64,000 bases of DNA from positions 359,910,001-359,974,000 of the forward strand of contig NW_027362769.1 of assembly GCF_046119375.1 (NCBI RefSeq). Reading direction: 5' to 3'. Each line of letters starts with the position of its first letter. The first letter of the stretch is position 1. Shown in pieces: positions 3,499 to 14,911 of the stretch. Under the pieces are notes generated by a model that saw nothing but the letters and a program-made list of their open reading frames with translations, made no database searches and was not told the DNA's origin. The position numbers and the translations under genes were made by a program. The stretch comes from Phyllobates terribilis. Lineage: Eukaryota.

Positions 3499-3533
3499 TT
3501 AACCCCTTTCTGACCCAGGGCGTATTAGTACGT

Positions 3534-3613
3534 AGAGGAAGACCGTCACCGCTATGGACGTGGTGTACGCGCTCAAGCGCCAGGGCCGCACTCTCTACGG
3601 CTTCGGAGGTTAA
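3534..3613 (+). pseudogene. H4: Histone H4 3' fragment ([25 protein letters not shown])
   Basis: Matches the 3' end of H4 at about 61555-61634; 5' part absent; homologous 3' flank continues to about 3770. Confidence 0.95.
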
Positions 3614-3645
3614 TTGTATTCTCTGCTCCATCCTGACAACCCAAA

Positions 3646-3661
3646 GGCTCTTTTCAGAGCC
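3646..3661 (+). terminator. Histone 3' stem-loop (H4 fragment)
   Basis: GGCTCT-TTTC-AGAGCC preceded by CCAAA, followed by ACCAC. Confidence 0.95.
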
Positions 3662-4710
3662 ACCACATCTTCTGAGTGAGAGGCTACAATCTCCTGTTGC
3701 TGTGCCGGGAGCTGATCTCTACTGTGCACTGGTGATCTCTGTATTCTGGCTGGTGGATCGCTCAGGTGTCCAGTTTGGGTGATGTGATGTGTCTTCTTAT
3801 GGATCTATAACAAATATTACACACGGTGGATGCGGGGGAGTGGTGATACATATAGCTCTGTGCACACAGCTCATACCCTGCTGTGATGCGATTATTACAG
3901 AACAGAAATCCAAGTCTTGCCATGAGATGAATGTGTTGATTCTGCTACATGATATTTTTTCAGATCAGTGTAGGATGCAGCGAATATTCACTGCATGAGG
4001 CAGCTGGATAGATGGCCGCCCTGTGTACCCGGTATGTAGACTCCAATGTGATGACCGCTGATCTGTTTAGCCAATGAGTAGTAACCAGATATAGGGGTTT
4101 CCTCCTTCGTTTAACTCCTTAGTGGCCGTGTGTCTGCTGATCACACACATGATTTACTCAAGCGGCTCCTTCCCCCACTACAGACCCGCAGCGCTCACAT
4201 CAGGCTCCTGGTAGAACATGAGACTTGTCTTAGTCTGTGGTGGGATCGGAACCGACACCACAGGGAATCCGCAAAGAATAATACGCGGGTGAGTGAGGAG
4301 CCTCCTGCACGTGTAGATGGAGCGGAGAAGCATCAGATCACTGCTGAATATACAGATAACGGCACTGATTGGAATTAACCCCCTCTCCCCCTACATGAGG
4401 ATTGTGTGGAGCGCAGAAAACCCAAGCAAAGTAATCGTCCAATTTATAGGTTTTGTGGAATAAAAAACATAATGACTGGACTCCATGCTTAATCTTCCCC
4501 TACGGAAATATTTACCAGTCATCCCTTGTACACTGCTGAATATACTAGATCACTGCACCATCACCACACCAGTAACATGTAGCAGGATCTACCTGTGCAT
4601 TTAATGCTTCTACTCTATAGTAAACAATGTATCGTGTAGTTCTATCTGACGCTGCAGGCGATGGTTCTCTTATCCACCAGCGGTGCCGGCTCTGATGAGG
4701 AGGATGTGGT

Positions 4711-4726
4711 GGCTCTTAGAAGAGCC
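4711..4726 (-). terminator. Histone 3' stem-loop (H2A)
   Basis: Minus strand GGCTCT-TCTA-AGAGCC, preceded by CCAAA and followed by ACCAC. Confidence 0.92.
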
Positions 4727-4760
4727 TTTGGTTGTTCGGACAGATGTGGAGGAGCGGCGC

Positions 4761-5153
4761 TCACTTGCTCTTGCTCGCCTTGCTGCTCTCGGTCTTCTTG
4801 GGCAGCAGCACGGCCTGGATGTTGGGCAGGACGCCTCCCTGGGCAATGGTCACCCCACCCAGCAGCCTGTTGAGCTCCTCGTCATTGCGCACCGCCAGCT
4901 GCAGGTGACGGGGGATGATGCGGGTCTTCTTGTTGTCCCGGGCGGCATTGCCGGCCAATTCCAGGATCTCAGCAGTCAGATACTCCAGCACAGCGGCCAG
5001 ATAGACCGGAGCGCCGGCGCCGACTCTCTCGGCATAATTGCCCTTGCGGAGAAGCCTGTGCACACGGCCGACTGGGAACTGGAGTCCTGCCCGGGATGAG
5101 CGGGTCTTTGCCTTAGCACGGACTTTGCCTCCTTGTTTGCCGCGTCCAGACAT
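4761..5153 (-). CDS. H2A: Replication-dependent histone H2A, intact
   Basis: 130-aa [12 protein letters not shown]...[12 protein letters not shown]...[13 protein letters not shown]; intronless; stem-loop downstream. Confidence 0.98.
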
Positions 5154-5442
5154 CGCTGTAATCTACTCCAAATAGTCAAAAGCAGAGACAGAAGTGAACT
5201 CTAGAATAATGCCCCTTCTGGCTCCTCAGTCGCCTTTTATCCGCTGCTGCCCCGACCTCCTACCTTATCATTGGATGGATCTGAAGCCGCCAATGGAGAG
5301 CAGACGTGTGGAAACACCAATAAGACGCAGCGGAGGAGCAGGCAGCATTGCTCATTTGCATGTGTGGCTATAAATACCGCTGCGCTGCAGGAGCAGAAAC
5401 ATTGTTCTCTCTTCTCGGAGTTGTGATCGCTGTATACTCACC
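5154..5442. promoter_or_regulatory. Bidirectional H2A/H2B promoter
   Basis: CCAAT boxes in both orientations (about 5270-5321), octamer ATTTGCAT 5354-5361, TATAAATA 5369-5376; typical vertebrate H2B layout. Confidence 0.88.
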
Positions 5443-11720: not shown

Positions 11721-12659
11721 GTCAGGGGTGGATTAAGAGTAGCGCAGCCCCCCCCACACACACACCTGATGTATCACATGTCACATGATCCCCTGTGATA
11801 GTTCACATGAAATTAATTGGGCACAATATTAATTATAATAATTTTTTTTAGGCTGTTTGCCCACTATGAGTTTTTTATGCGTTTCCGCCGCGGCAATTCC
11901 ACTGCAGAAACACTTAAAAAACGCTTGGTAGAAGGCCTTCCATGTTCGCCAATGATAATCCGCATGTGCACTGCACATGCTGCGGAAATTTCCGCTGCGG
12001 ATTATCATTGCGGAAAAATCCGCAGCATTACCAATTATTTTGCGGAAGCGCGGCGTTTTCGCCGCCATTGACTTGCAATGGAACGCATGGAATCCGCATC
12101 ACTGCATTTGTACATGCAGAATCCATGCGTTTCAATGTGCAGATGGTAACCAGGTTTGGAGAAGAGGAGTCTCTCCGCACCCGGGTACCATAGAACCTGT
12201 AAAAAAAGAATAAAATAAAAAATAAATATTATACTTACCTTATGACGTCCCCCGGTGTCTTTATCCTATGCGTCCTGGCTTGCCGGCAGCTCGCGATGGT
12301 CTGAAAATGACCTGCCGTGACGTCATTTAGTCATGTGACGGGTCACACGACCGCTGACGTCGGCAGGCCATCAGAAGGTAAGTATATATTTTTTATTTTT
12401 TACCATTCTTTTACGTTCACACTATATAAATCCATGCTGGTTGCATGGATTTATATAGTGTAACCAAGTTGTCAAGCACTTTCCAAGTGATGCTAAAATC
12501 GCTTGGAAAGCGCTTGTCAACCCGCATGCAGAAATGCATGTGAAGAACGCTTCACTTCCGCTTGTCCCTGGCAGGAAAAACGCATGTACAATCCGCATGT
12601 TCAATCCGCACGCGTTTTTTCTGCCAGGGAGATACAGAAACGCTCAAAATATGAAGCAC

Positions 12660-13310
12660 ACGTAGCCATCTATACACAGCGCGAGGCCGCACGGTGCCAT
12701 CGATACTCAGCGGGAGGCCACAAGGTGCCATCTATACACAGCAGGAGGCCGCACGTAGCTATCTATACACAGCAGGAGGCCGCACGGTGCCATCTATACA
12801 CAGCAGGAGGCAGAACGGTGCCATCTATACACAGCGGGAGGCCGCACGTAGCCATCTATACACAGCGGGAGGCCACACGGTGCCATCTATACACAGCAGG
12901 AGGCCGCACGTAGCTATCTATACACAGCAGGAGGCCGCACGGTGCCATCTATACACAGCAGGAGGCAGAACGGTGCCATCTATACACAGCGGGAGGCCGC
13001 ACGTAGCCATCTATACACAGCGGGAGGCCGCACATAGCCATCTATACACAGGAGGAGGCCGCACATAGCCATCTATACACAGCGGGAGGCTGCACGTAGC
13101 CATCTATACACAGCGGGAGGCCGCACATAGCCATCTATACACAGCAGGAGGCCACACATAGCCATCTATACACAGCAGGAGGCCGCACGGCGCCATCTAT
13201 ACACAGCGAGAGGCCACACAGCGCCATCAATACACAGCGGGAGGACACACGGCACCCACCCCTAGAGACAGCAGGAGGCCGCACGGTGCCATTTATACTC
13301 AGCAGGAGTC
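12660..13310 (+). repeat. About 31-bp tandem repeat
   Basis: GCCATCTATACACAGC(A/G)GGAGGCCGCACG(TA/GT), about 20 copies. Confidence 0.9.
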
Positions 13311-13324
13311 CGCACGCAGTCACG

Positions 13325-13480
13325 CACACACAAACATATACAGACATATACATACATACACGCATAAACACATTTGAAACACAAAAATACATATAAACAG
13401 ACATCACTCAATGACATCTCTCTGCACACACACACACACACACTCAATCACACACACACACACACACTCACACACACTCA
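13325..13480. repeat. CA-rich microsatellite
   Basis: (CA)n tracts. Confidence 0.85.
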
Positions 13481-13846
13481 CCATCCCCCGGCTCGGCTCC
13501 AGTCCTCCTGCTCCTCTCCGATGCAGCAGTGCAGGCCGGGAGCGCACTGCGTGACGTCACAGCTAGGAGACACGGCCGCGCACAGGGCCGTGTCTCCTAG
13601 CTGTGACGTGGCCGGACCAGCACAGGGAAGTTAACTGCTGCAGTGTTGGCGCGGCCGAATAAGAAGTAGCGGCCGTGCGCCGCTGCTGGGGGAGCGGTCC
13701 GGGGGCCCCCCCGCCACTGTCTGCCGTTATGTGCCGCGGCGCCGCACATATAATGAGGGCAATCTAGCCATAGACACCCCGGAGCCCCCCTGAGGAGCGG
13801 GGCCCCGGGCGGTAGCCCAGATTGCCCTCATTATAATCTGCCTATG

Positions 13847-14237
13847 TGTAAAGTATATAGAGCAGCCTGTACAGTATATAGAGCAGTGTGTACAGTATAT
13901 AGAGCAGTTTGCACAGTATATAGAGCAGTTTGTACAGTATATAGAGCAGCCTGTACAGTATGTACAGCAGTGTGTACAGTATATAGAGCAGTCTGTCCAG
14001 TATATAGAGCAGTGTGTACAGTATATAGAGCTGTCTGTACAGTATATAGAGCAGTGTGTACAGTATATAGAGCAGTTTGCACAGTATATATAGCTGCCTG
14101 TACAGTATATAGAGCAGTGTGTGCAGTACATAGAGCAGTGTGCACAGTATAAAGAGCTGCCTTTACAGTATATAGAGTAGTATGTACAGTATATAGAGCT
14201 GCCTGTACAGTATATAGAGCAGTCTGTACAGTATATA
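13847..14237 (+). repeat. 21-bp minisatellite, continuation
   Basis: Same unit as 10315-11720. Confidence 0.95.
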
Positions 14238-14799
14238 TGTAGCGCCCCAAGGGTTCGGTCGCTACAGAGGTATTACATCTCACCCAGAGGTGCGATATCT
14301 CACTTCCAGGTAAGGATGGAGTGTGGCTCAGGACCCTAACACCCGCATGCACTACACCACATTTCCGGGGGACAGGGCGACAATGCTCCCAAGTGTGAGC
14401 ACAACTGCCCCTGTCCCTGGCTGGAATGGGGGGAGGGAACACCTAGAAAGGGGGAACCCGGTAGTGTGTGGGTGTGGGAGAGTAGATCCTGGGTGCACTG
14501 ATGAGAGAGGTATAAAAGGTGGGAGCCATCTTAGAGACAGTGCTCCGTCAGAGGGAAGAAGTGACAGAACAGGGCCTCTGTGGAGCTCTGCTCCGGAGGC
14601 GTGTCTAGCCTATGAGGCTCTGCCAGGACAGAGAGTAGAGAAGAGAGAGGAGAAGACAGGGAGCAGGGGCTCTGTACGAGCTCTGCTCCACGGGCAGGCC
14701 AAGTCACAAGGCCTGGGCCTGGAGGAGAAGGAAGGAGAGGAGAGGAACGGAGGAGGCTCCAGGAGTGGACTGAAGGGACCCCAGGGGTGCGTACCTGGA
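14238..14799 (+). mobile_element. Truncated LTR related to the solo LTR at 25066-26109
   Basis: Starts TGTAGCGCCCC...ATCTCACCCAGAGGTG, similar to TGTGGCGCCCC...ATCTCACCCAGAGGTG at 25066; right part missing, fused to the piggyBac-type end. Confidence 0.7.
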
Positions 14800-14911
14800 G
14801 GATCCGTTGAAGCATTCCAGAGTAATTACCTCATAAAGTGACAGTGGTCAGAATTGTAAAAATTGGCCTGGTCATTAAGGCGCAAACCACCCTCGGAGGT
14901 AAAGGGGTTAA

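Follow-up and report, generated by a model that had tools for sequence, protein, structure and literature searches.

A histone H2A-H2B gene pair held between piggyBac-type transposon ends inside a Ty3/gypsy element of the frog Phyllobates terribilis

The stretch of DNA analysed here, 64,000 nucleotides of Phyllobates terribilis (assembly GCF_046119375.1, contig NW_027362769.1, positions 359,910,001 to 359,974,000 of the forward strand; "the window" throughout, numbered from its first letter), lies inside a histone cluster, with H2A/H2B at 40.3-42.5 kb, H1 at 55.7-56.5 kb, H3 at 58.8-59.2 kb and H4 at 61.3-61.6 kb. Near its left edge, the reverse transcriptase (RT) gene of a Ty3/gypsy retrotransposon is interrupted by an insert of 11,405 bases (3503-14907), which begins with CCCCTTT, finishes with AAAGGGG and is flanked on both sides by TTAA. 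Between two short transposon ends this insert carries 11.27 kb of histone-cluster DNA: a 3' fragment of H4, an H2A gene, a shared promoter, an H2B gene and a satellite-rich spacer. The host element with its long terminal repeats (LTRs), the target site and the transposon ends are laid out as follows.

519-966, minus strand: 3' LTR of the host Ty3/gypsy element (88% identical to 16360-16770; polypurine tract; AGTGA at 514-518)
967-3498, minus strand: downstream half of Gypsy pol, with RT from the insertion site on, RNase H and integrase (Pfam RVT_1, RT_RNaseH_2, Integrase_H2C2, rve)
3499-3502, no strand: left copy of the TTAA target duplication (read directly; a single TTAA here in uninterrupted copies of the family)
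3503-3533, plus strand: left transposon end, 31 bases, starting CCCCTTT (assigned to its family by the inverted repeat only)
14800-14907, plus strand: right transposon end, 108 bases, ending AAAGGGG (abundant family of TTAA-ended repeats)
14908-14911, no strand: right copy of the TTAA target duplication (read directly, with contig comparison)
14912-16359, minus strand: upstream half of the Gypsy element, with gag, the protease region and the stretch just before RT (Pfam Retrotrans_gag; reading frames)
16360-16770, minus strand: 5' LTR of the host Gypsy element (LTR comparison; AATGA at 16771-16775)

The interrupted RT gene belongs to one Ty3/gypsy element, which lies on the minus strand and has both of its LTRs. 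These start with TG and finish with CA, except for a mutated first dinucleotide in the left one, and they are enclosed by a 5-base duplication (AGTGA at 514-518, AATGA at 16771-16775), with a polypurine tract beside the 3' LTR. Pfam places gag, RT, RNase H and integrase in the expected order, and the RVT_1 match starts exactly at the insertion site, at profile position 2; the element thus shows what marks a Ty3/gypsy retrotransposon, namely two TG..CA LTRs, a target duplication and the order gag-PR-RT-RH-IN (PR, protease; RH, RNase H; IN, integrase). An earlier reading of the same letters by a model without database searches (the sequence-only reading) had allowed for the two Gypsy halves coming from different copies, and the LTRs, the 5-base duplication, the domain order and the position of the RVT_1 match instead identify them as one element. 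This copy is no longer intact: an in-frame stop lies at 3312-3314 of pol, and further stops are found elsewhere in it.

The insertion into this element is precise, both Gypsy flanks rejoining on one TTAA letter for letter. We aligned contigs from four public runs under three species labels (organisms A, B and C) to 14240-15400, and in contigs of other copies of the host Gypsy family, reading leftwards past 14915, a single TTAA stands where there are two here. The undisturbed site was therefore one TTAA, and the consensus of the uninterrupted Gypsy equals the left flank of our element plus one TTAA in 26 of 26 letters. The sequence-only reading had held that the join restores the Gypsy frame apart from one missing base. 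Its first part is borne out by the rejoining flanks; the missing base is a length difference at 14912-14914, beside the TTAA, that is private to this Gypsy copy, and this one-base frame problem was not caused by the insertion.

The cargo between the two transposon ends reads from left to right as follows (open reading frames are abbreviated ORF and Tandem Repeats Finder TRF).

3534-3612, plus strand: 3' fragment of H4, the last 25 codons and stop (98.3% identical to 61555-61796, the site of the full H4)
3641-3686, plus strand: H4 3' stem-loop (Rfam RF00032, 36.9 bits, above the gathering score)
4686-4731, minus strand: H2A 3' stem-loop (RF00032, 30.4 bits, E 2e-6, slightly below the gathering score)
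4761-5153, minus strand: intact H2A of 130 codons (ORF; Pfam Histone and Histone_H2A_C)
5154-5442, no strand: divergent H2A/H2B promoter with CCAAT boxes, ATTTGCAT octamer and TATA box (read from the sequence)
5443-5828, plus strand: H2B, 33 codons readable and the remainder N from 5544 to 5828 (ORF, length and colinearity)
5853-5898, plus strand: H2B 3' stem-loop (RF00032, 31.5 bits, E 9e-7)
5879-8288, plus strand: 39-base satellite, 62 copies, straight after the H2B stem-loop (TRF)
8778-10083, plus strand: cluster spacer with an 18-base satellite at 9123-9915, 44 copies (98-100% identical to 63248-63997; TRF)
10315-14237, plus strand: 21-base satellite at 10315-11722 and 13847-14237, split by a 2.1-kb block (TRF and self-comparison)
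14238-14799, plus strand: first ~560 bases of an LTR-like repeat, cut at the right edge of the cargo (69-72% identical to 25066-25492)

Homology to H4 begins at 3534, within the coding sequence, as comparison with the complete H4 in the window shows. The H2A protein is identical to the H2A encoded in four frog assemblies, and in related frog assemblies H2A is followed by H4, tail-to-tail, in the same order as in the cargo. The H2B gene is covered by a run of N that begins 101 bases into its coding sequence. In related frogs the H2B beside H2A has 125 codons, and an H2B of that size would end here at 5820; the stem-loop lies about 30 bases further on, at the spacing seen for H4 and H2A, and the second H2A/H2B copy of the window (40348-42519) stays colinear with the cargo on either side of the run, the shift being at most one base (offsets 36618 and 36619). 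Because of the H2B length, the stem-loop spacing and this colinearity, the run looks like a mask that keeps its true length, with both sides continuous; an unsized assembly gap is ruled out by the length and the colinearity. The second H2B copy has a run of N of its own (42162-42296), and both such runs in the window sit on H2B coding sequence with length kept.

At the other edge, 14800-14911 is among the most repeated stretches of the region, and in organisms A, B and C numerous short contigs cover that stretch alone, ending at the TTAA and entering unlike DNA on both sides. Left of 14800, other copies of the family share a different common continuation (in 204, 140, 6 and 1 contigs), and since they diverge from our element exactly there, the cargo boundary at 14800 is real. 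The right end differs from the family majority at two listed positions only (14879 and 14881). On these contig comparisons, the right 108 bases form one end of an old and very abundant family that inserts at TTAA and is present in three frog species. The right junction itself shows a 2-base overlap (GG at 14800-14801) between the transposon end and the cargo's LTR-like repeat, which continues further in a second copy from 25066 onward; overlaps this short are commonly left by template switching or end joining. Neither end recurs in the 64-kb window; a search by sequence of the survey's index with the right end gave no match, and conserved words of the right end gave 0 matches in two metagenome scans.

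The architecture described by the sequence-only reading therefore stands on re-reading: a Gypsy RT gene interrupted at TTAA (3499-3502 and 14908-14911) by an insert with CCCCTTT...AAAGGGG ends; terminal sequence of about 31 bp on the left and about 108 bp on the right, as set by the start of H4 homology at 3534 and the divergence of family copies at 14800; and a cargo of H4 entered mid-gene, H2A, promoter, H2B and spacer, on which Pfam, the Rfam stem-loops and the promoter elements agree. A composite of two full MITEs (miniature inverted-repeat transposable elements) flanking cluster DNA was considered and rejected: the ends are 31- and 108-base stumps without inner ends, and the left junction falls mid-codon in H4.

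How might this loaded element have arisen? We suggest that a non-autonomous, TTAA-specific transposon with piggyBac-type ends, a member of a very abundant family, landed in an old Ty3/gypsy element of the histone cluster, within its RT gene, and that 11.27 kb copied from a histone repeat unit then took the place of the transposon's interior, apart from 31 bases at the left end and 108 at the right. The most likely mechanism would be the repair of a break that fell within the element or at it, in which synthesis copied the element inward from its ends, took a nearby histone unit as its next template and then returned; two stumps of one element, foreign DNA between them and a 2-base overlap at the junction are the usual mark of such repair. 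Internally deleted elements and Pack-type elements are believed to arise by the same process. The capture would most likely have taken place at this site or within the cluster, and since the Gypsy LTRs are only 88% identical, it would be much younger than the host. Its outcome would be an extra H2A-H2B pair with promoter and 3' signals, in a shell that may still be movable.

Capture in place is favoured because it takes one event fewer, because cargo and landing site lie in the same cluster and share an orientation, and because there is no second copy in the window and no listed public run with words of the left junction (a weak test). Spacer 50-58 kb away is 98-100% identical to the cargo, and the cargo and the native histone matches run in the same orientation. 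The sequence-only reading had proposed a captured and moved histone cargo, with the copying of histone DNA into a resident piggyBac as its alternative. The capture holds and the movement does not find support, with one copy in the window and no listed run containing the left junction, and it is the alternative that gains from the location in the cluster, the near-identical spacer and the shared orientation. Nothing tested indicates that the loaded element moved as a unit. We think it rather probable that the capture was local and came about by template-switch repair; both the repair mechanism and the local origin are inferred.

Several points weigh against this account. Between H4 and the shared spacer, the unit at 61-64 kb carries 1.45 kb of different DNA in place of H2A/H2B, and the H2A/H2B pair at 40-42 kb is only 87-95% identical to the cargo and is broken; by letter comparison, the closest histone units as they now stand do not qualify as the donor. 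After piggyBac excision the site is as a rule cleanly resealed, and gap repair with filler DNA is less expected there than in hAT, P or Mutator elements. The kept ends, at 31 and 108 bases, are near the minimal ends of the Trichoplusia ni (T. ni) piggyBac that suffice for movement, and ends so close to the minimum are the pattern that would be expected if only movable products survived. The left 31 bases would belong to the family of the right end by way of the inverted repeat, and the search of the listed public runs for the cargo-specific left junction, which none contained, sampled three words at low coverage and is a weak test. Finally, the order of capture and insertion is not fixed by the locus, as both histories yield the same structure there.

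The reverse order would make this a true Pack-type piggyBac: histone DNA captured elsewhere, and the loaded 11.4-kb element then moved into the Gypsy, perhaps over a short distance inside the cluster. A local hop of this kind is needed because a random landing in the cargo's own cluster would be very unlikely in a multi-gigabase genome, and even with it the history requires one event more than capture in place and yields a cargo oriented like the native units. A perfect TTAA duplication with intact terminal letters on both sides is what a move would leave, a transposase could plausibly act on ends of the length kept here, and the neighbouring histone units are not exact donors; against these stand the lack of a second copy in the window and of any listed run with the junction words. 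On balance we regard a move of the loaded element as unlikely, if worth keeping in view. The stronger claim, that this frog has an active family of piggyBac-type shells which take up whole genes and mobilise them, this element being a mobile H2A-H2B cassette, seems to us quite doubtful. If true, such a cassette would be one way in which histone genes came to be dispersed through a transposon-rich cluster whose repeat units span tens of kilobases.

Local capture by repair would stand unchanged if the ends came from a TTAA-targeting superfamily other than piggyBac. The duplicated TTAA characteristic of piggyBac is present, and other copies of the family also end at TTAA; the published end motif starts with C, finishes with G and has C[C/A/T][C/A/T][T/G/A][T/A/G][T/G/A] as its first six letters (PMC5381638), which CCCCTT fits at letters 1-3, 5 and 6, its fourth letter (C) falling outside. 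The inverted match of the two termini is perfect over 7 of 7 letters and then 7 of 13 (14 of 20 overall), compared with about 12-19 bases usual for piggyBac. Kolobok also duplicates TTAA, and together with that fourth letter and the lack of a transposase linked to the family here (none among ten scanned ORFs of at least 220 amino acids from 16.8-64 kb) this could point away from piggyBac; but Kolobok and T2-MITE ends begin AG/AGGRR (PMC6004289), at odds with the CCCC...GGGG ends here, and the first three letters match the piggyBac motif. Judged by their letters, the ends fit piggyBac better than Kolobok, and we call them piggyBac-type, not proven piggyBac; an origin in Kolobok or another such superfamily is very unlikely. 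The sequence-only reading took them for piggyBac ends; the TTAA duplication, the CCC/GGG termini and the first three motif letters agree with this, the fourth letter does not. A sub-terminal repeat like that of T. ni piggyBac was rejected, as the shared TTCTGACC word is at chance level (253 of 2000 shuffles). Separately, TTAACCCTTT, which resembles a piggyBac-type end, occurs on the plus strand at 8335-8344 and 15798-15807 (2 found, 0.07 expected); neither copy has an inverted partner, and they were dismissed as element ends.

That the interior or a junction was misjoined in this satellite-rich region is hardly credible: the insert does contain about 6 kb of tandem arrays plus the run of N, but a misjoin would not create a TTAA duplication, matching inverted ends and letter-for-letter Gypsy flanks, and the run of N keeps its length and its colinearity with the second H2B copy, although the arrays may have been assembled with the wrong number of copies.

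That cut-and-paste transposons of plants, and also Helitrons, take up host DNA is amply documented, the captured pieces usually being gene fragments; to our knowledge, capture by piggyBac-type elements in vertebrates has been little documented. The Xenopus TxpB (Uribo/Kobuta) piggyBac family and its short derivatives are also frog TTAA elements, and their ends, which begin CCYTTT, may resemble the CCCCTTT seen here. The Pack-MULE and Pack-TYPE elements of plants are non-autonomous shells with inverted ends and a target duplication whose interior is host gene DNA (PMC6431247, PMC8903248). Our element is like them in that a transposon shell is filled with host gene DNA from elsewhere, with related units at 40-42 kb and 61-64 kb. 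Those elements, however, belong to Mutator, CACTA and similar superfamilies, are mostly 1-2 kb long, carry gene fragments and form families with several moved copies, whereas here a TTAA/piggyBac-type shell in a vertebrate holds an 11.3 kb cargo with whole genes and is known from one copy. The defining feature of Pack-TYPE elements, several moved copies, has so far not been seen here, one copy being present in the window.

The nearest piggyBac precedent is Pokey of Daphnia, a piggyBac-superfamily element resident in ribosomal DNA (rDNA) that carries rDNA spacer repeats evolving in concert with the array (PMC3849761). In both cases a piggyBac-type element sits in a tandem multigene family and holds that family's spacer; Pokey, though, is autonomous, with a specific target in 28S, 200-base spacer repeats and many copies, whereas the frog element is a MITE emptied of its interior, which carries a whole slice of a histone unit and occupies one site. 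In Dothideomycete fungi, hAT transposons captured a spliced histone H3, amplified to hundreds of copies and then mutated (PMC6710886); these too are DNA transposons with an acquired histone gene, but in the frog the cargo is genomic DNA with promoter and spacer, and no amplification was seen. A TTAA shell in a vertebrate with a whole H2A-H2B pair and its promoter appears to be without a description in the literature searched.

A putatively complete, promoter-bearing histone pair in a shell with both ends and a clean duplication is a concrete test case for the movement of whole genes, and it shows a route by which a histone cluster could gain an extra gene pair by repair copying; within the window, the captured H2A is intact and the neighbouring H2A is broken. 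Should the element never have moved, it would amount to a neat but unremarkable instance of filler DNA in a transposon. This is a real capture event of moderate interest, at one locus.

Some further features of the cargo spacer may be recorded here. The other H2B copy, at 42.5 kb, has no match to the cargo beyond the stem-loop. Between flanks that are 98-100% identical, the 18-base array has 44 copies in the cargo, compared with about 13 at 63595-63829 in the native spacer. The 2.1-kb block that splits the 21-base satellite (11723-13846) contains a 31-base array, a CA-rich stretch and two palindromes and is probably another inserted element. The LTR-like repeat starts with TGTAGCGCCCC at 14238-14799 and TGTGGCGCCCC in the copy from 25066 onward and occurs in great numbers in the public runs from all three species; in many of its copies a stretch of 105-126 bases around 14535-14645 is swapped for short unrelated filler.

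Transposon DNA makes up most of the cluster here. The interval from the loaded element to the native histone genes contains a second integrase of Gypsy type and a separate ORF for reverse transcriptase (19643-21614 and 23750-24646). The neighbouring H2A (40348-41700) is split by an insert of about 0.9 kb with TG..CA ends and a 5-base duplication, GACCG, and has a stop at an early codon, while the H4 that adjoins the cluster spacer (61326-61634) has CTG at the position of the ATG start, the remaining coding sequence being open.

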